A stretch of 64,000 bases of DNA from the IMG/VR virus record IMGVR_UViG_3300038465_000091, positions 62,001-126,000 of that record. One strand, 5' to 3'. The notes under the pieces were generated by a model. That model searched no databases, was not told the DNA's origin, and worked only from the letters and a program-made list of their open reading frames with translations. This document shows positions 235 to 62,529 of this stretch, piece after piece. The position numbers and the translations under genes were made by a program. Positions within the stretch are counted from its first letter, which is position 1, and each line of letters opens with the position of its first letter.

Positions 235-309
235 TGGAGCACCCGGTCGGTGTCGAGCCGACTCATAATGGTTTTGCAGACCATTGCGTTCCCGTTTCGC
301 CACGGATGC
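235..309 (-). tRNA. tRNA-Cys(GCA)
   Basis: Cloverleaf GCATCCG...CGGGTGC-T-CCA; anticodon arm ATGGT-CTGCAAA-ACCAT; CCA encoded. Confidence 0.92.
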
Positions 310-313
310 AAAT

Positions 314-694
314 TTAAATGCGTTTCAATACCTGTGCTTCTTCAAAAGTCGCTAGGCGGTGATGATTAGCACAAAGCACATCACACTTTGCGGCTTCTCG
401 CTTCACTCGTACAAGGGACCAACCCTTCTTACGGGTTTCAGATAAATTCAGTTCTTTTGTCGCCCTATCGCGATGGGCAAAATCTAAACAGACTGGATGT
501 TCCCGCCATCCGCAAACTTTACAACCCATCTCCATTTTGTAAGCGTCCAGCCATTGACAAATAACGGCTATCCGCTTTTTATCATTCTTCCGCACCGCTT
601 TCAAGTGTCGTGCCTTCCGAACTGGATCGGCGTAATACCGCTTCCAGTACCCAGCACGATATTCCTTGCGCTTCTTGCAATCCTTCAACGGCAT
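314..694 (-). CDS. HNH-type (His-Me finger) endonuclease-like protein inserted in the tRNA cluster
   Basis: CKVCG...LDFAH...KCDVLCANHH motif; basic N-terminus; lies between two tRNA genes. Confidence 0.75.
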   Translation of the reverse strand: MPLKDCKKRKEYRAGYWKRYYADPVRKARHLKAVRKNDKKRIAVICQWLDAYKMEMGCKVCGWREHPVCLDFAHRDRATKELNLSETRKKGWSLVRVKREAAKCDVLCANHHRLATFEEAQVLKRI

Positions 695-699
695 AAATT

Positions 700-773
700 T
701 GGCGGGGATACGGAGAATTGAACTCCGATTTTATGATAGACAGTCAAATGTCCTACCCTTGAACGATATCCCC
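700..773 (-). tRNA. tRNA-Asp(GTC)
   Basis: GGGGATA/TATCCCC acceptor, G73, CCA; anticodon loop CT-GTC-TA. Confidence 0.9.
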
Positions 774-785
774 GTTCTTAAATTT

Positions 786-860
786 TGGTGGACACGGGGG
801 GATTTGAACCCCTTCTTTCACTTTGCAAGAGTGACGCATTCCCAGTTATGCTACCGGCCC
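786..860 (-). tRNA. tRNA-Ala(TGC) with irregular (bulged) acceptor stem
   Basis: TCACT-CTTGCAA-AGTGA anticodon arm; G3:U70; A73; CCA. Confidence 0.85.
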
Positions 861-1075
861 ATTTTTGCTGGTTTCGCGACACTCTTCGTGCCGTGTACCA
901 GATCAAACTCTAATTGCCGAACCACCATCAGGTCCATCTTGAACAGGGCTTCATCCTCGGTGTCGGCAGATGCGACTAGGCCGAGGGTGGGGTGAACCAC
1001 TTTGAATCCCCAATCATACCTCTCGACCTCCACGGTCGTTACCAGCTTGACGATGCGTTGTCTGTCGCGTTTCAT
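851..1075 (-). CDS. Small HicB-like (RNase H-fold antitoxin-like) protein
   Basis: ATG at 1075 after GGAG; VVHPTLGLVASADTEDEAL resembles the HicB P-x-L-x3-G/A-x-T-x-E-E-A signature. Confidence 0.45.
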   Translation of the reverse strand: MKRDRQRIVKLVTTVEVERYDWGFKVVHPTLGLVASADTEDEALFKMDLMVVRQLEFDLVHGTKSVAKPAKMGR

Positions 1076-1090
1076 CTTCTCTCCGAATCT

Positions 1091-1169
1091 TGGTACGCCG
1101 AGAGGGACTCGAACCCCCGATAATACTTGCTTGTAGGGCAAGTGGTTTCGCCGCTCACGCCATCGGCGT
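1091..1169 (-). tRNA. tRNA-Val(TAC)
   Basis: ACGCCGA/TCGGCGT acceptor, A73, CCA; anticodon arm CTTGC-CCTACAA-GCAAG; GGTTCGAGTCC T-arm. Confidence 0.9.
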
Positions 1170-1180
1170 AAATTTACCGC

Positions 1181-1214
1181 AAAAACAAAAAGGACGCCTT
1201 TTTAGGGGCGTCCT
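1181..1214 (-). terminator. Intrinsic terminator directly upstream of tRNA-Val (attenuator terminator)
   Basis: Minus strand AGGACGCC-CCTAAAAA-GGCGTCCT followed by TTTTGTTTTT. Confidence 0.85.
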
Positions 1215-1266
1215 CGGAATTCGTTGGTTTTAGGCTATTTAGCCACCCCAACCATCCAAGGACACC
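1207..1266 (-). promoter_or_regulatory. Antiterminator hairpin, mutually exclusive with the terminator
   Basis: GGTGTCCTTGGA (1255-1266, inside the leader ORF) pairs over 12 bp (2 G:U) with TCCGAGGACGCC (1207-1218), which contains the terminator 5' arm. The helix is extended by GTTGG/CCAAC and GGCTA/TAGCC. Confidence 0.8.
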
Positions 1267-1385
1267 ATATCTCCTACCGGCGCCGCGTCAGCGGCGACAG
1301 TACCGCGTTCGGCTGTACAAGCCGACAGGACCACGCCTGCACAGACGACCGTCACGACAACACCGTCTTGGAGAATGGAGTTCAT
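1239..1385 (-). CDS. Putative attenuator leader peptide (48 aa; Val/Ala/Gly/Asp/Cys-rich)
   Basis: MNSILQDGVVVTVVCAGVVLSACTAERGTVAADAAPVGDMVSLDGWGG*; the stop codon lies inside the antiterminator hairpin. Confidence 0.7.
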   Translation of the reverse strand: MNSILQDGVVVTVVCAGVVLSACTAERGTVAADAAPVGDMVSLDGWGG

Positions 1386-1397
1386 AAGCGTCTCTAT

Positions 1398-1427
1398 TTA
1401 CAATACTCGGTATTCAGGAAACTTGCA
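1398..1427 (-). promoter_or_regulatory. Sigma70-like promoter for the leader/tRNA operon
   Basis: Minus strand TTGCAA-17 nt-TATTGT, 12 nt upstream of the leader ATG. Confidence 0.55.
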
Positions 1428-1451
1428 ACAACTATTTTTCAGAAAAGTTTG

Positions 1452-1700: not shown

Positions 1701-1775
1701 TGGTGGACCTAGAGGGAATTGAACCCCCGACATCAGCCTTGCAAAGGCTGCGTTCTCCCGCTGAACTATAGGCCC
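1701..1775 (-). tRNA. tRNA-Ala(TGC)
   Basis: GGGCCTA/TAGGTCC acceptor with G3:U70; CAGCC-TTTGCAA-GGCTG anticodon arm; CCA. Confidence 0.95.
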
Positions 1776-1973
1776 AACCCCTTTCGGACGCGGTACACGT
1801 GCTACCCGTCGTCCTTAGGGCTCCCCCTCGTGCGATCCTCATGCCCGTGACAGGGTGATTGAAGACGGGGGCTGCGGTGCATACTCTAGAACTGTCACGT
1901 CCTATTGCCTTTTACGGCAGAGCAGGGGCAGAACGCAGGCTCACATTAAGATAATACCGTAGTCTGGGGATTC

Positions 1974-2222
1974 TTACAAGCGGGTCGTGACTTCTTTGTA
2001 GATGCCATCCACCCGTTCAACGAATCCGTAAATGCCCGTGTGCTGTTCCAGCCAGCGGGTAGTCTTGTTGTCCGACCGTGTAGGACCGATCAGCTTGCCC
2101 AATCGATCTTCCAGCGTGCGGGCCTTCTTCTCGTTGCCGCACACGTGCCGCACGAACCTTTGACGCGGCGAAGCGTCGTAGTCATAGACCAGCAAGTTGA
2201 TGTAGACCTTTTCAGTCTTCAT
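1974..2222 (-). CDS. Hypothetical protein (82 aa)
   Basis: ATG at 2222 (MKTEKVYINLLV...), overlapping the end of the small upstream ORF. Confidence 0.6.
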   Translation of the reverse strand: MKTEKVYINLLVYDYDASPRQRFVRHVCGNEKKARTLEDRLGKLIGPTRSDNKTTRWLEQHTGIYGFVERVDGIYKEVTTRL

Positions 2223-2767: not shown

Positions 2768-3736
2768 TTATACCAAACTCAGGGGAGGAATCGCTAGGAA
2801 TCTGAAATTATTTTTCGTGGTGCCGTCCATCAGCGGACGGAACACCCACGCCTTGACCAGCCCCTCGTGCATTTCAACGTCGATCTTGAGCAGCCTGATG
2901 TTCGACTCGGTGCGGTAAATCATGTTCTCGCGAATCTCTTCGTACTCAGGCGTGCCTTTGGCGAACGTCTCGGTGACGGAGGTACGCTTGCCGCCTTCAT
3001 ACTTCTCTCGCGTGCGGTCCAGCGTCAACATGGTGCTTGCCTTCAACTCTTTCAGGTACTTGCGGTTCCCTGCAAGCTGCGGGCGAAGAACCTGCGCCAA
3101 CCACTGCTTGTTGCCTTCACACGAGAATTCGTAGGGCAGGAAATCACAGCCGAAGCAGCGCCCGACGCGGTAGCCAGAGTGGTTGTATTCCGACATCTGG
3201 TAGCCGTGGTGCACCATTTTCTGCTCGTCGGTGAGCTTCTGGCGGTTCTGACAGATGGTGCAGGTGCCCGTGTTAGCGATCTCGGCGGCGAGTGCTTCCG
3301 GGGTTTTGTTGGTGACGTTCGGCTTGCGGCCCTTCTCGATGAAGGGTTTCACTTCCTTGATAAACTTGCCGATTTCAACCAGTTCCCGCAGGTATTCCAT
3401 GTATTCCAGAATGATCGTGTTGGCGTAGCCATTCTTCTTTTCGAGGTTGCGGAGCAGCTTGGGGGCGCTGATGGGGGTCATGTAGCCGCTGATGTCGTAA
3501 CGCGGGTCGTTGTGGCTGAAGTCGTAGTCGTTGCTGGCCCGACGCTCAACGTAGAAAGGCTCGGCGGCGACGGTCATCGCTTGTTCAATGCAACGTGAAA
3601 CCGTGTCCTTGGCGTTCTGAAAATCGACGTTCCAGATGTGGTGTTCTTTGACGCCCAGTTCGAGGACCGACAAGGCGGTTTGAAAACGCTCGACGTTTGC
3701 TGGCTGGAGGGCGGCGGTGATTTTGTTCGTCTTCAT
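2768..3736 (-). CDS. Hypothetical protein with CxxC...HHG...C putative Zn-binding motif
   Basis: 322-aa ORF; GTCTICQ...MVHHGY...CFG; GGTATAAT promoter just upstream. Confidence 0.75.
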   Translation of the reverse strand: MKTNKITAALQPANVERFQTALSVLELGVKEHHIWNVDFQNAKDTVSRCIEQAMTVAAEPFYVERRASNDYDFSHNDPRYDISGYMTPISAPKLLRNLEKKNGYANTIILEYMEYLRELVEIGKFIKEVKPFIEKGRKPNVTNKTPEALAAEIANTGTCTICQNRQKLTDEQKMVHHGYQMSEYNHSGYRVGRCFGCDFLPYEFSCEGNKQWLAQVLRPQLAGNRKYLKELKASTMLTLDRTREKYEGGKRTSVTETFAKGTPEYEEIRENMIYRTESNIRLLKIDVEMHEGLVKAWVFRPLMDGTTKNNFRFLAIPPLSLV

Positions 3737-4637: not shown

Positions 4638-6908
4638 TTATATCCATTTATACTGGAATTCGAGCGGCAACGGTGTGTGTTTTTGTAATTCCCCTAGAAA
4701 AGTTGGAGGCACTAACCCAGAAAACTCACACTGCCCCCCAGCGCAGGCCGATGTTTCCTCTATGGTGGTGGTATCTTCGTCCTCTATCAACTGACTATAA
4801 TCGACCACTACGGTCTCACGGCGCAAATCACACCAGAGCTTCCAGTTATTCACCTCTTTCAAACAGTAGCTCATGCGCCGAAGATCACCTTCGAAATATC
4901 GTTCGGCAAATTGTTTCGCCCGGCGAACCCAGTCAATCTGTTCGAGGGTAAACTTTTCGGATTCGGGAATGGCACCTAAAGCCGCGTCACACGCTTTCCA
5001 CAAATCGTCTGGGAAAACATGAAGTCCATCGACAATTAACCCCGAAGCCATCAGGCTACCGTCGCCATACATTCGAGCAATCTCCGTTGGGGTGTGGATA
5101 GCTAGAAATGGGGCCTGACGATAATCCAAATCCCCCATGTCCGACAACAAAGACACTCCCGCAAGATGCTCGCGGTTTTCGTAGATGAACCCTTCGACCG
5201 CATCCCATTCATCGGCTCTAACGTTGATCGTATTGGAAACGTTATGACGGAGCCACGGGGCGGTGCAGCGTTCAAGCACCTTGCCAGCCGCTACCCAATT
5301 TTGCTGGGTCAAACAGACGTGCTCCAATTGCGTGCGGGCGTTCTCCCCATCTTTCGTTTTTGCCGATTCACGAGTTTCGATGCAAAAGGAAATTATGCTG
5401 TCAGTGCCGTTCGCGCTCCAGAAACTCTTTTCGACGGCGCGAGGATTGTGCTTCTTGAAAAACAAGTATGGAGCTTCCAACTCGTTTGCCTGCACCCTGC
5501 GGATGTACCGCTTGGCGTGATGGAAATGGACGCCGCTGGATGTACCCAGCAGACACGCGGAATTTCCTGAGGGCTTCACGCAAGTGCTTCTGGCGGATGG
5601 GTTGATTCCAAGTTTCCGAGCAATATCCTCATTGACACTCACGACCAGTTGTGCCATTTCGCGCTGGGTCTCGGGGTTGAAAAGCACCTCAGGATTTTCC
5701 ATCATTCCTGTGATGGAAACCCCCAGAAGGGCCTCTCGTTCCACTATTCGCTTTGTTGCCTCTCCCAGATACGGGAAGTCTGTGTAAGCCGCCTGCAACG
5801 TGCCTATGATGGCACCCGCCCGTGCTGCTATGGCAAAATCTTCTTTGGTGCGGCATTTACCGCCATTGATTTCACACAAGTTGCAGAATGCCCAACCCGA
5901 TTCGCCTGTTGTGATATCGAGTGGGTACATTCCGATTTCCACACAAGGATTGAAGAGCATTTCCGTGGAATCGGACCACACAAACCCGGGCTCTCCGAAC
6001 TGCTTCACCGAACTCATGAATGCATGGAATTGTTCGCGTGTCGTGTCCGAGCGCAGAAGCAGGACGCTGTTGTTAGACCGCCCTCGCTGGGGATCGGTAT
6101 ACGACCAAGAACCTGTTTTGGCATTCAACATCAGATCGTCGTCAGGTGAGAAAACACAGATGGTAGCCGACCGTCTCACCCCGCCACTGAGCACCGCATC
6201 GCTGGCGTGCATCACCAGATCATAAGCGTCGATGGTACGCAATTTGGTTTGTCCGTTGCTGATGCAACGATCAAGCAACCCACGTATATTCTCCAAGGAT
6301 TTCTTGAGAGGTTCTGGGCCGGGAGCTTTACCGACGCCCGAAGAAAGATAACTCCCCTTCGGTCGGATTTTGCTATAATCAAATTTGACCGTAGTTCCAA
6401 GCCATTCCATCAGACCATCAGATGGGAAGTAGCTCGCAAGTAGTACACCGAGAGCGTCAGCCCAACCTTCGATTGAGTCTGGAATCGTGAACACTTTCTC
6501 GGGGAAAGACCCACCATTCATGCGGGAAGACAAAAAACTCGGAAGTTTGGCGATATGGTGTTTTTGTACTGAGAACCCCACACCACAACCACTTAGCAGG
6601 AGCCACAAAGCTTCTTGGAAAAATTTGATGCGGTCGCAGTAGGACACAACGCAGTTGTACATTCGGGCGTTGTTGCGGAGGATAGGTCGCCCGCCGTATT
6701 GAAGGGCTCTCTGAGAGCCTAGAACGCGCTTAGCCCTCACTTGGTTAAATGCCCATCGAATCTCTTCTTCGACCTGTGGGAAACGGTCTAAGTGCATTTG
6801 TTGCACACGGTCAACGGCTTCGTGCCAAATTTCTCGACGTTTCGTTGCTTGATCGTAACGGGCGTACTTTGAATTGAAGGTATAATCTTGTAGTGCTTTG
6901 ATGGACAT
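4638..6908 (-). CDS. nrdJ: Class II (adenosylcobalamin-dependent) ribonucleotide reductase
   Basis: YNC, GCGVGFSV, SGGVRRSA, NPCVEI, CNLCEING, TCVKPSG and C-terminal CAGGQCE redox pair; no adjacent beta-subunit gene. Confidence 0.9.
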   Translation of the reverse strand: MSIKALQDYTFNSKYARYDQATKRREIWHEAVDRVQQMHLDRFPQVEEEIRWAFNQVRAKRVLGSQRALQYGGRPILRNNARMYNCVVSYCDRIKFFQEALWLLLSGCGVGFSVQKHHIAKLPSFLSSRMNGGSFPEKVFTIPDSIEGWADALGVLLASYFPSDGLMEWLGTTVKFDYSKIRPKGSYLSSGVGKAPGPEPLKKSLENIRGLLDRCISNGQTKLRTIDAYDLVMHASDAVLSGGVRRSATICVFSPDDDLMLNAKTGSWSYTDPQRGRSNNSVLLLRSDTTREQFHAFMSSVKQFGEPGFVWSDSTEMLFNPCVEIGMYPLDITTGESGWAFCNLCEINGGKCRTKEDFAIAARAGAIIGTLQAAYTDFPYLGEATKRIVEREALLGVSITGMMENPEVLFNPETQREMAQLVVSVNEDIARKLGINPSARSTCVKPSGNSACLLGTSSGVHFHHAKRYIRRVQANELEAPYLFFKKHNPRAVEKSFWSANGTDSIISFCIETRESAKTKDGENARTQLEHVCLTQQNWVAAGKVLERCTAPWLRHNVSNTINVRADEWDAVEGFIYENREHLAGVSLLSDMGDLDYRQAPFLAIHTPTEIARMYGDGSLMASGLIVDGLHVFPDDLWKACDAALGAIPESEKFTLEQIDWVRRAKQFAERYFEGDLRRMSYCLKEVNNWKLWCDLRRETVVVDYSQLIEDEDTTTIEETSACAGGQCEFSGLVPPTFLGELQKHTPLPLEFQYKWI

Positions 6909-61069: not shown

Positions 61070-61120
61070 GAAGTTAAATATTCCTAGCCAAAATCCTCAG
61101 ACTTCTGGTATCATGTAATA

Positions 61121-61390
61121 GATGGTCGTAAGCCCCGCAAGGGGTAAAAGGCACTGGTACTGATTTTCAGACAGGGGTTCGACTCCCCTCAGGTCCACCA
61201 TAAATTTTTGCACCACCTTATGGGCCTGCCCCGGTTTCGATGGAGACGGTATGGGATGGCAGCCAGCGACCCGAGCGCAAGGGTGTACCCTCGTTAAACA
61301 GGCATTCAAAAAAGTAAACGCTGAAGCTCCAAAGGCTTTCGCTGCTCATGCTTAATGAGCCAGACCCCGTGGGTCTGTTCCTCAACACGG
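61121..61390 (+). ncRNA. ssrA: Circularly permuted two-piece tmRNA; tag (A)AEAPKAFAAHA
   Basis: Acceptor piece ends ...GACAGGGGTTCGACTCCCCTCAGGTCCACCA (61200). A 21-nt spacer follows, then the coding piece starts GGGCCTG (61222), which pairs with CAGGTCC (G3:U70). Tag ORF at 61320-61355 follows GTAAAC. Outer boundaries are approximate. Confidence 0.9.
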
Positions 61391-61396
61391 CAAGAA

Positions 61397-61422
61397 CGCC
61401 CGCGCAAGCGGGCATTTTTGTT
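61397..61422 (+). terminator. Intrinsic terminator after tmRNA
   Basis: GCCCGC-GCAA-GCGGGC-ATTTTTG. Confidence 0.8.
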
Positions 61423-61467
61423 TCTGGTTGACAATCTGAATTCCAAAGGCTAGTATAGGGGCACATT

Positions 61468-62529
61468 ATGGCAAACGACAAGGTTAGGGAAGCACTCAAA
61501 GCCGCCGCGAGCTTCAAGGCACGCGGCATCAAGAAAGCCGCTCTGGGCGTAGTTGCGGAGTACGAAGCGAAGAAAGCCAAGGACTACGACGACATCAACG
61601 GCTCCAAAGACAAGTGTGCCGACTGCGGTGTCAAATCCGGCAAGCCCCACAAAGAATCCTGCAATGGTGGACTGCACGATATAAAGTCCAAGAAGGCCGC
61701 TCCCGGCGATCCGATCCAACGTGACCAACCCGCCGCCCAAGCCGACCCCGCCATCCCCGATCCGACTGCTCAACCTGCCGCTCCCGTTGCCCCACCCGTG
61801 GAAGAGGTCGAAGAGGCAGAGGAGACTCCCGAAGCTAAAGCCGCTCGCGTGCGTGAAGCACTTGAGACCGAGTTAGGCGACGACGATCTGGTGACGGCTG
61901 TCCTCGAATTTCTGGAAGCCGAAAAATTCGACTACGACGATTACAGCGTCGATGTCACGGATAACAGCGACGGCACAGCCACGGTCGCTGGCTACATCAT
62001 TGCCCCCAACGACGACATTCCAGAAAGCATCGCTCTGGCACAGGTCCGTAGCGATTTGGAAAGCGAGCCTGAGCTTTTCAATCAGGATTGGCTCCAAGGA
62101 CACATCGACGAGGTGCGCCTCCGTGACCATCTGTACTCAGACACGGAGGAAATGATCCGTGATTCCCCCGACTCTTATGGGTGGGTGCCCGGAGGCGGCG
62201 AAGAACTCGTCCGCTTTAACGCCGAGGGTGAAGAAGAGGATGACGGCGAGTACGATTCGGCTGGTGAGCCCATTGTAGAGGAGACCGAACCCTCCGACGA
62301 CTGGCTTGAAGAGAAGACCAATGAACTCCTCCGCTATCCCGTGCAATACCTGACGGACATGTTAGGCGAAGAGGACGGCATCAAACAGGCGATATCGATT
62401 GCTGGGATCGACATTAACGCAGCGGCAGAAGAAGCGGTTGCAGCCGATGGCTGGCAGCACTTCCTGTCCCGTTATGACGGAAACTCGTACGATCTCGCTT
62501 CTGGCGGGGTTTATTGGCGAGAAAATTAA
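61468..62529 (+). CDS. Acidic hypothetical protein with basic N-terminal leader
   Basis: 353-aa ORF; basic N-terminus with CxxC..H..C, acidic C-terminal domain ending HFLSRYDG. Confidence 0.75.
   Translation: MANDKVREALKAAASFKARGIKKAALGVVAEYEAKKAKDYDDINGSKDKCADCGVKSGKPHKESCNGGLHDIKSKKAAPGDPIQRDQPAAQADPAIPDPTAQPAAPVAPPVEEVEEAEETPEAKAARVREALETELGDDDLVTAVLEFLEAEKFDYDDYSVDVTDNSDGTATVAGYIIAPNDDIPESIALAQVRSDLESEPELFNQDWLQGHIDEVRLRDHLYSDTEEMIRDSPDSYGWVPGGGEELVRFNAEGEEEDDGEYDSAGEPIVEETEPSDDWLEEKTNELLRYPVQYLTDMLGEEDGIKQAISIAGIDINAAAEEAVAADGWQHFLSRYDGNSYDLASGGVYWREN

Follow-up and report, generated by a model that had tools for sequence, protein, structure and literature searches.

The 64,000-nucleotide (nt) stretch of DNA analysed here, called the window in what follows, covers positions 62,001 to 126,000 of the IMG/VR virus record IMGVR_UViG_3300038465_000091. 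Near its beginning it carries, on the minus strand, an array of phage-encoded stable RNA genes, transfer RNAs (tRNAs) together with an RNase P RNA, and directly in front of tRNA-Val in this array lies a short element consisting of a promoter, a small open reading frame (ORF) and an intrinsic terminator. An earlier note, made from the sequence alone, had taken this element for a leader-peptide attenuator that may switch on the tRNA and RNase P RNA genes when the matching tRNAs run out. Here the element is compared with its relatives, its alternative RNA structures are analysed, and the attenuator reading is weighed against other explanations. Coordinates are window positions, and features lie on the minus strand unless they are marked (+). 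The features, with sizes in nt, base pairs (bp) or amino acids (aa), are collected in Table 1.

Table 1. Features of the leader element and of the surrounding RNA gene array in the window.
Feature	Position	Strand	Basis or remark
Upstream promoter-like site, TTGTAA-17-TATTAT	1951-1979	-	Promoter scan; sequence kept in L002 and L004
tRNA-Ala(UGC), upstream of the leader	1701-1775	-	tRNA calls; absent from L023, L026 and L029
Leader promoter, -35 TTGCAA (1428-1423), 17-nt spacer, -10 TATTGT (1405-1400)	1400-1428	-	Read directly
Leader ORF, 48 codons and TAA	1239-1385	-	ORF call; homologues P0002-P0014
UCUCC in codons 4-5, candidate 'region 1', predicted to pair with an internal GGAGA	1370-1374	-	Folds
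H1, GC-rich 11-bp hairpin within the ORF	1276-1301	-	Alignment fold
Shine-Dalgarno-like AGGAGA, 5 nt 5' of an in-frame GUG	1270-1275	-	Purine-rich equivalent kept in all variants
Antiterminator 5' strand (A), codons 40-44	1255-1266	-	25 to 14 nt before the stop in all variants
Inner hairpin of the antiterminator, invariant TAA (1241-1239) in the apical loop	1223-1252	-	Two sequence types keep the hairpin
Shared strand (B)	1207-1218	-	Pairs with A or, via 1215-1207, with the terminator 3' arm (C)
Intrinsic terminator, 9-bp stem 1215-1190, 8-nt loop, U5GU5 tract 1191-1181	1181-1215	-	
tRNA-Val(UAC), first gene past the terminator, 11 nt after the U tract	1091-1169	-	tRNA calls
Conserved 74-aa ORF, function unassigned	851-1075	-	ORF call; normal coding substitution pattern
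tRNA-Ala(UGC)	786-860	-	tRNA calls
tRNA-Asp(GUC)	700-773	-	tRNA calls
HNH endonuclease gene	314-694	-	PHROG match, E = 1e-19
tRNA-Cys(GCA)	235-309	-	tRNA calls
Class A RNase P RNA, 5' part, cut by the window edge	1-86 (approx.)	-	Rfam

Past the terminator the genes stand as the earlier note had described them, and the four tRNAs, the HNH gene and the RNase P RNA could all be confirmed; the only descriptive claim without support is that the 74-aa ORF is HicB-like, for which Pfam and NCBIfam gave no profile match. The RNase P RNA is present in full length on the same 223.5-kb contig (IMG/VR 3300038465_000091; 139 bits), and beyond the window (L001 7652-9167) the array goes on with Gly(UCC), Gly(GCC), Ala(GGC), Glu(CUC), Val(CAC), Ala(CGC), Val(GAC) and Glu(UUC). 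Together, the tRNAs of the window and the contig are able to read all 16 GNN codons, plus Cys, and the arrays of relatives (compared in L002, L012, L018, L020 and L024) add the Gly anticodon CCC to this set of Val, Ala, Asp, Glu and Gly tRNAs. Cys(GCA) is the sole tRNA outside the GNN class, and no other codon class is represented within 2.5-6 kb on either side. The packaging of one first-base codon class together shows that these arrays are not a random assortment. In a scan of the minus strand over the whole RNA gene array, the leader terminator was the only strong terminator-like site.

The promoter of the leader, which had been proposed from its two hexamers, can be read directly in the sequence. 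It scores 8 of 12, under the cut-off of the promoter scan, and its motif occurs once. In the relatives the hexamers are kept while the sequence of the spacer varies, in the manner of a sigma-70-type promoter; the consensus -35 hexamer TTGACA is found in L008, L023, L026, L029 and L030, and TATTAT and TAATAT are among the -10 hexamers of the relatives. Transcription would start at about 1393, which gives a probable 5' untranslated region (UTR) of roughly 8 nt. The 48-codon ORF was recovered by the ORF call, and the residue and codon counts of the earlier note are exact: 10 Val and 7 Ala, both using all four of their codons, 7 Gly, 4 Asp and 2 Cys. With the single Glu, these residues make up 31 of the 47 that follow the Met. 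The proposed match between the leader amino acids and the downstream tRNAs turned out to be better than claimed, as Gly and Glu tRNAs are also part of the array, and the seven Gly of the leader find their explanation in the Gly tRNAs beyond the window.

Relatives of the element were sought by a protein-pattern scan of viral contigs, a word-based protein search, a metagenome scan and a profile search covering 1.84 billion representative proteins. About 20 loci were found, all from soil and peat samples, and they hold 17 distinct versions of the element, the variants referred to below. Among sequenced phages a close relative was not found, only tRNA segments match; of the cultured phages, the Acidobacteriota jumbo phage Tunturi_5 comes nearest, judged by one neighbouring protein with 34% identity. 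A covariance model of the element (R1) gives one copy per locus, and no paralogous leader elsewhere in the window. At every locus tRNA-Val heads the same Val/Ala/Asp/Cys/Gly/Glu array, tRNA-Val(UAC) as the first gene of the array after the leader being common to all relatives, and the RNase P RNA stands behind a tRNA-Cys wherever the locus extends that far. The terminator has a GC-rich stem of 9-10 bp followed by U5GU5, and 11-20 nt separate it from tRNA-Val(UAC) at every locus but L019, a distance that leaves no room for the independent promoter which the earlier note had named as the arrangement that would speak against its reading. L023, L026 and L029 lack a tRNA upstream of the leader; there, a near-consensus promoter (TTGACA-17-GAATAT or TAATAT) and the leader stand at the very front of the array, which means that the transcription of at least the first tRNAs must pass the terminator.

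Two further observations concern the surroundings of the element in the relatives. In L019 (920-1324) an ORF is inserted between the terminator and tRNA-Val; paired Cys-x-x-Cys codons at its start are of the kind found in homing endonucleases of the HNH or zinc-finger type. No promoter is obvious for the ORF itself, which would depend on read-through. A gene for a protein with sigma-70 regions 2 and 4 is found in L023 (4374-5099) and L026 (4882-5559), about 0.5-1 kb upstream of the leader promoter and on the same strand, and such a phage sigma factor beside the tRNA operon may be relevant to the operon's transcription.

The earlier note made its reading depend on a conserved leader ORF, and all 17 variants keep it. 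The ORF is 34-51 codons long, its length differs by whole codons (multiples of 3 nt) only, and the TAA stop has the same place in the alignment throughout; in the 11 variants in which they were checked, the other two frames contain 1-5 stops each. This pattern shows that the leader is maintained as an ORF, as if read by ribosomes. The peptide has a semi-conserved start (MN..), a variable segment rich in V/I/G/A/T and always holding a Cys, a conserved core, ERGTVAADAAAVGD, and a short tail. Val, Ala, Asp, Glu, Gly and Cys make up 56-67% of the residues in every variant as compared to 35% in the proteins of the phage, and the count of these residues in the window leader is reached by 0.04% of the 47-residue windows of the phage's own proteins. 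Pooled over the variants, the enrichment relative to the phage proteome is 3.9-fold for Cys, 2.1 for Ala, 2.0 for Val, 1.8 for Gly, 1.2 for Asp and 1.0 for Glu, while none of the other residues is above 1.06-fold. That the five most enriched residues (Cys, Ala, Val, Gly and Asp) all belong to the six defined beforehand has a chance of 6/15504. The variants are related, and the composition match is therefore one observation at the level of the family and not seventeen.

The substitutions in the last 24 codons of the leader (1239-1310; the window and 10 relatives) differ from those of an ordinary gene. Variable columns are distributed as 1/9/7 over the three codon positions, as compared to 22/17/42 in the adjacent 75-codon gene of the same loci. 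The first positions, mostly G, are frozen, and the replacements stay within GNN (D/G/E, A/V, G/D). It seems that selection here acts on the codon class rather than on the amino acid, with the reservation that only two tail haplotypes exist and few independent events stand behind the 1/9/7 pattern. The third-position diversity in the H1 block is 0.027, eight-fold lower than in the neighbouring gene (0.226), which shows a constraint at the level of the RNA.

The intrinsic terminator was confirmed, its stem being followed by TTTTTGTTTTT down to 1181, and so was the 12-bp helix that had been proposed as the antiterminator. In this helix strand A, GGTGTCCTTGGA (1266-1255), pairs with strand B, TCCGAGGACGCC (1218-1207), through 10 Watson-Crick and 2 G-U pairs. 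All 9 nt of the terminator 5' arm fall inside the helix, so that the two structures are mutually exclusive. When the ORF was dinucleotide-shuffled, 0.5% of the shuffles formed a helix of this type, of at least 12 bp and lying over the terminator 5' arm. The z-score of the 120-nt fold is -4.95, and the complete antiterminator, with about 21 bp, is a long and irregular hairpin around the stop codon. The expectation of two exclusive structures was also borne out by the comparison, where both helices are conserved with compensatory changes. In the alignment of the 17 sequences, 96.9% of the cells of H1 and A:B are paired and three pairs have changed on both sides, and for the terminator (B:C) the values are 100% and two pairs; none of 500 shuffles reached the covariation score in either case. 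The apical part of the terminator differs among lineages, yet it always pairs. L027 has G in place of A at one position of B, and the partners of this position in A and in C have both gone from U to C, a three-way covariation as expected if B uses both partners, and in L030 a C-G pair of H1 has become U-A through two synonymous changes of Ala codons. H1 may serve as a pause or timing hairpin for the RNA polymerase. The pairing of UCUCC with the internal GGAGA was predicted in 10-11 of 11 sequences, and it also appeared when the terminator was enforced in the fold; it counts as weak evidence because it never varies.

As isolated hairpins the antiterminator (-26 to -34 kcal/mol) is more stable than the terminator (-13 to -18 kcal/mol). 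Over the whole transcript the antiterminator is ahead by 1.7-6.1 kcal/mol in 11 variants, and in 4 divergent variants the terminator is ahead by 3.7-7 kcal/mol. By these calculated energies the two states are close, about 2-7 kcal/mol apart, and such a balance is what a switch needs. The geometry relative to the stop codon is the same in all variants, with A at -25 to -14 and the start of B at +21 to +23. To map the effect of a stalled ribosome, a footprint of -15 to +12 around the ribosomal A site was masked for each codon, and the RNA was folded with the polymerase on the U tract. The predicted structure is the antiterminator as long as the A site is at one of codons 1-37, and the terminator when it has come to the last ~11 codons.

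Taken together, we consider it probable, at roughly 60%, that the element is an attenuator of the leader-peptide type, in which a ribosome decides over the transcription of a phage operon made up of stable RNA genes. Of the six features by which a class I leader-peptide attenuator can be recognised in sequence, five are present, namely the ORF, the terminator, the antiterminator, the placement of the ORF and the codon enrichment. For the sixth, a 1:2 or pause element, H1 is kept with one compensatory pair, and the pairing of the 5' end is not conserved. Sequence and comparison show the ORF with its promoter pattern, two helices that exclude each other in an unchanging geometry, and a leader with a particular codon composition that stands first in the array; from these we infer that translation is coupled to termination, in which direction the system responds and what triggers it physiologically. 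Of the interpretation in the earlier note, the conserved ORF, the two structures and the codon match have stood, and the role given to a run of Val codons and to a ribosome at the stop codon has not.

In this reading the switch would work as follows. Transcription from the leader promoter, and in the window phage from an upstream promoter too, would run into the 34-51-codon ORF, and the outcome would be decided by a kinetic race of ribosome against polymerase. A first ribosome fast enough to have reached the last ~11 codons, or the stop, by the time B emerges would occupy A; B would then pair with C, and transcription would end at the intrinsic terminator, 11-20 nt short of tRNA-Val. With a slower ribosome, still somewhere among the first ~37 codons, A would pair with B into the long hairpin enclosing the stop codon, the antiterminator, and the polymerase would read through into tRNA-Val, the other tRNAs and the RNase P RNA. 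About 60% of the leader codons are GNN or UGY and are read by tRNAs of the operon, and for this reason the transit time of the ribosome would report the supply of just these tRNAs in charged form. By sensing that supply the operon would put phage tRNA synthesis under negative feedback, with codon demand, host tRNA decay or anticodon nucleases as possible triggers. The on-demand tRNA replenishment suggested in the earlier note is thus a plausible reading of the sequence. Its full form, a closed-loop sensor in which tRNAs made scarce by codon demand, host RNA turnover or anticodon nucleases release the transcription of tRNAs and of the ribozyme that matures them, we put forward more tentatively, and with more doubt than belief.

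Several points weigh against the attenuator. The 5' UTR of the window leader, some 8 nt by the estimate above, lacks a clear Shine-Dalgarno sequence, and for that reason an efficient translation of the leader is an assumption; in the divergent relatives the UTRs are slightly longer and have AGG or AAGG, and purine-rich ribosome-binding sites are present at many genes of the window. Glu is not enriched in the leader, even though the array has Glu tRNAs, and codons for Ile, Leu, Thr, Ser and Asn occur in it as well. The run of Val codons that the earlier note singled out is not conserved, with Val counts of 4-11 and two variants of only 34-35 codons, and we rejected it as the regulatory core; the regulatory codons are spread through the leader and form no tight run. 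Much of the nucleotide conservation in the ORF is structural at the RNA level, and GC-rich helices could therefore account for part of the richness in GNN. Few independent events stand behind the covariation counts. Furthermore, all variants belong to one phage lineage with a single tRNA set, a shallow family, which makes the match of codons to tRNAs a single evolutionary observation.

The mechanics leave difficulties of the same kind. The earlier note had a ribosome at the stop codon cover the 5' strand of the antiterminator, but such a ribosome sits in the loop between A and B with most of A behind it, and a standard footprint there leaves 10 of the 12 nucleotides of A free. Covering takes place during the last ~11 codons, and a block at the stop codon itself could be steric only. 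No conserved anti-antiterminator (1:2) was found across the variants; in L023 and L026 different upstream segments pair with A, and a 5' GAGACGC that can pair with A or with the terminator 3' arm in the window phage was rejected as 'region 1', being absent in L023, L026 and L029. Later tRNAs could also be transcribed from promoters inside the array.

The conservation of nucleotides in H1, A, B and C goes beyond the needs of a peptide, and it may be asked if the element is an RNA switch that works independently of translation. The choice between the structures could then be made by a phage or host protein, by uncharged tRNA as in a T-box, by temperature or by folding kinetics, or the long A:B hairpin could be a site where RNase III-type processing separates the leader from the tRNA precursor and affects stability. 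The irregular hairpin of ~21 bp resembles the RNase III substrates of phages, which are known from the early RNAs of T7, and the very short 5' UTR with its poor Shine-Dalgarno sequence speaks for this reading as well. Yet an RNA of this kind has no need for indels in multiples of 3, for a frame that stays open in 17 variants or for a stop at fixed distance from A and B; the region has no match to a T-box or to any other such family in Rfam, even at E up to 1, and a fixed processing site needs no overlapping terminator kept by compensatory changes. We regard an RNA-only element as unlikely. We would give about the same low weight to an ordinary gene for a small protein of 34-51 residues followed by a leaky terminator, with the tRNAs made by constitutive partial read-through and the hairpin over the stop codon stabilising the mRNA or tuning its translation. 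The C-terminal half of the peptide (the core ERGTVAADAAAVGD, then VS.xGW) is conserved at the protein level, and gene callers have annotated it as a hypothetical protein in several metagenomes. The substitutions are not those of purifying selection on a protein, however, as the first positions are frozen and the second vary as much as the third, and the N-terminal half is free in length and sequence while its composition is kept. Pfam, PHROGs and NCBIfam gave no match to a family. It would also be wasteful to keep a strong and always active terminator 11 nt in front of a promoterless operon of 13-16 RNA genes, and the overlap and co-variation of the antiterminator with the terminator arm would be left unexplained.

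Two other explanations carry still less weight. The terminated leader transcript of ~210 nt could itself be a stable small RNA acting in trans, beside or instead of attenuation, for which rnTrpL in Sinorhizobium, a small RNA derived from an attenuator, is a precedent (PMC6614838). The full terminated transcript does fold at -77 to -91 kcal/mol (z = -4.0), and in the window phage its 5' end can pair with the 3' arm, but this pairing is not conserved in divergent relatives, the RNA has no known target, and the conservation of the frame is not accounted for. Such a role is improbable as an alternative to the attenuator, and it would rather be compatible with it. The least credible explanation, in our opinion, is that the ORF encodes a small secreted lipoprotein, for example one that is spanin-like or acts in superinfection exclusion. 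It takes its appeal from residues 8-23 of the window copy, which are hydrophobic and end in a lipobox-like L-S-A-C. We have rejected this reading. A lipoprotein precursor calls for a lipobox of the form [LVI][ASTVI][GAS]C, which is not conserved and which only some variants fit, as relatives have VGVC, TVAC or LIDC or carry the Cys in another place. It also calls for a hydrophobic core of at least 7 residues, but in relatives this stretch is down to 3-6 residues or holds Arg, Lys or Asp, and the variants have no positively charged N-region.

The leader-peptide attenuator that we prefer has much in common with the known class I attenuators. They share the short leader ORF rich in regulatory codons, the terminator just before the regulated genes, the strand common to antiterminator and terminator, and an outcome set by the position of the leading ribosome. 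Leaders in which several amino acids are represented are also known, as ilvL and thrL are multivalent in the same way as the phage leader. The class I attenuators control biosynthetic enzymes, however, while the phage element stands before phage-encoded tRNAs and an RNase P RNA. It also differs in that the regulatory codons, a complete first-base codon class together with Cys, extend over about 60% of the ORF instead of forming a short run, in that the 5' strand of the antiterminator lies inside the ORF with the stop codon in the antiterminator loop, and in that no conserved 1:2 anti-antiterminator was found. The pheM leader of E. coli pheST, which encodes phenylalanyl-tRNA synthetase, is a leader-peptide attenuator that senses how far the cognate tRNA is charged and controls a component of translation, and it is the nearest functional precedent known to us. 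Its target is a protein, the enzyme for a single amino acid, and the genome is a cellular one; in the phage element the products are the tRNAs themselves, and the sensed molecule and the product would be of the same species. T-box riboswitches likewise gate read-through of a terminator by tRNA status via a competing antiterminator, but they bind uncharged tRNA directly and have no leader ORF, which the phage element has. An Rfam scan of positions 1-2400 of the window (E up to 1) gave no T-box, and nothing beyond the tRNAs and RNase P.

The tRNA clusters of phages, as in T4, T5 and mycobacteriophages, have been studied as counter-defence or codon compensation, and recent work deals with the evasion of anticodon nucleases and with codon use (PMC10264068, PMC11464382, PMC11555353). 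The array described here shares with the known clusters the interspersed small ORFs and HNH genes, and the proposed replacement of tRNAs lost to host nucleases or decay; it is unlike them in having exactly one codon class (GNN) plus Cys and in containing an RNase P RNA. The literature searched for attenuation together with tRNA genes of phages describes no attenuator of this kind in front of such an array.

A possible second example was seen in the Tunturiibacter phage Tunturi_5 (PP885688.1 239171-239388 = L022 2083-2300), whose tRNA array (Gln, Gly, Thr, Pro, His, Ala, Phe) is preceded by a 54-codon ORF that had not been annotated and by an intrinsic terminator, with about 100 nt from the terminator to the first tRNA. 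In the local fold a G-rich strand 24-16 nt before the stop pairs with the terminator 5' arm, and the stop is in the loop of an inner hairpin. The geometry is as in the leader of the window phage, but the ORF is non-homologous. We did not accept it as a second example, as the fold in full context keeps the terminator, a second frame is open and the composition match is weak (27/53); no relatives of this candidate leader were found, and it is ambiguous and can serve as a lead only.

In the window phage the element follows a first tRNA, as tRNA-Ala and the promoter-like site lie upstream of it. A poorly conserved spacer of about 270 nt separates this tRNA-Ala (1775-1701) from the leader promoter, and no terminator was predicted between the promoter-like site and the leader. 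The site is a predicted promoter that may drive the first tRNA-Ala and read into the leader. The region 5' of this tRNA-Ala (1945-1776) gives no significant fold (z = -1.0), and a motif, CTGTCACGGG, that was seen twice was rejected as being within chance expectation. Further upstream, a TATAAT hexamer is located 6 nt 5' of the ATG of a 322-aa gene (2768-3736, minus strand), which together with the leader UTR of ~8 nt suggests that the phage or its host uses leaderless mRNAs or mRNAs with very short leaders. Just downstream of the homologue of this gene in L004, at 4700-4774, ARAGORN calls a tRNA-like gene with a four-base anticodon (agtt), for which no equivalent was called in the window. At the other end of the window, at 61104-61446 (+), there is a permuted, two-piece transfer-messenger RNA (tmRNA) gene (Rfam RF04321, 69.7 bits; ARAGORN tag peptide AEAPKAFAAHA), and the window phage has with this three kinds of translation-related stable RNA: tRNAs, RNase P RNA and tmRNA.

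The observation itself is real and is reproducible across the phage lineage, and the architecture of an attenuator is well supported by the comparison of sequences. Why phages carry tRNAs, and how the expression of these is timed, is an old open question, and the current answers are codon compensation or the replacement of tRNAs destroyed by host defences. If the attenuator reading is true, at least some phages would regulate their tRNA output on demand, through a leader that senses decoding capacity. Leader-peptide attenuation, a textbook mechanism in amino-acid biosynthesis, would be extended to genes for stable RNAs, and the element would be the first attenuator to sense the very tRNAs whose production it controls. 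It could possibly be a general and overlooked way to regulate stable-RNA operons. The element is short and self-contained, which makes it suited to reporter constructs, and it could become a natural sensor part by which the supply of selected tRNAs is followed. That the array reads every GNN codon and Cys, and always carries an RNase P RNA, also hints at a selective pressure on one codon class in these phages.

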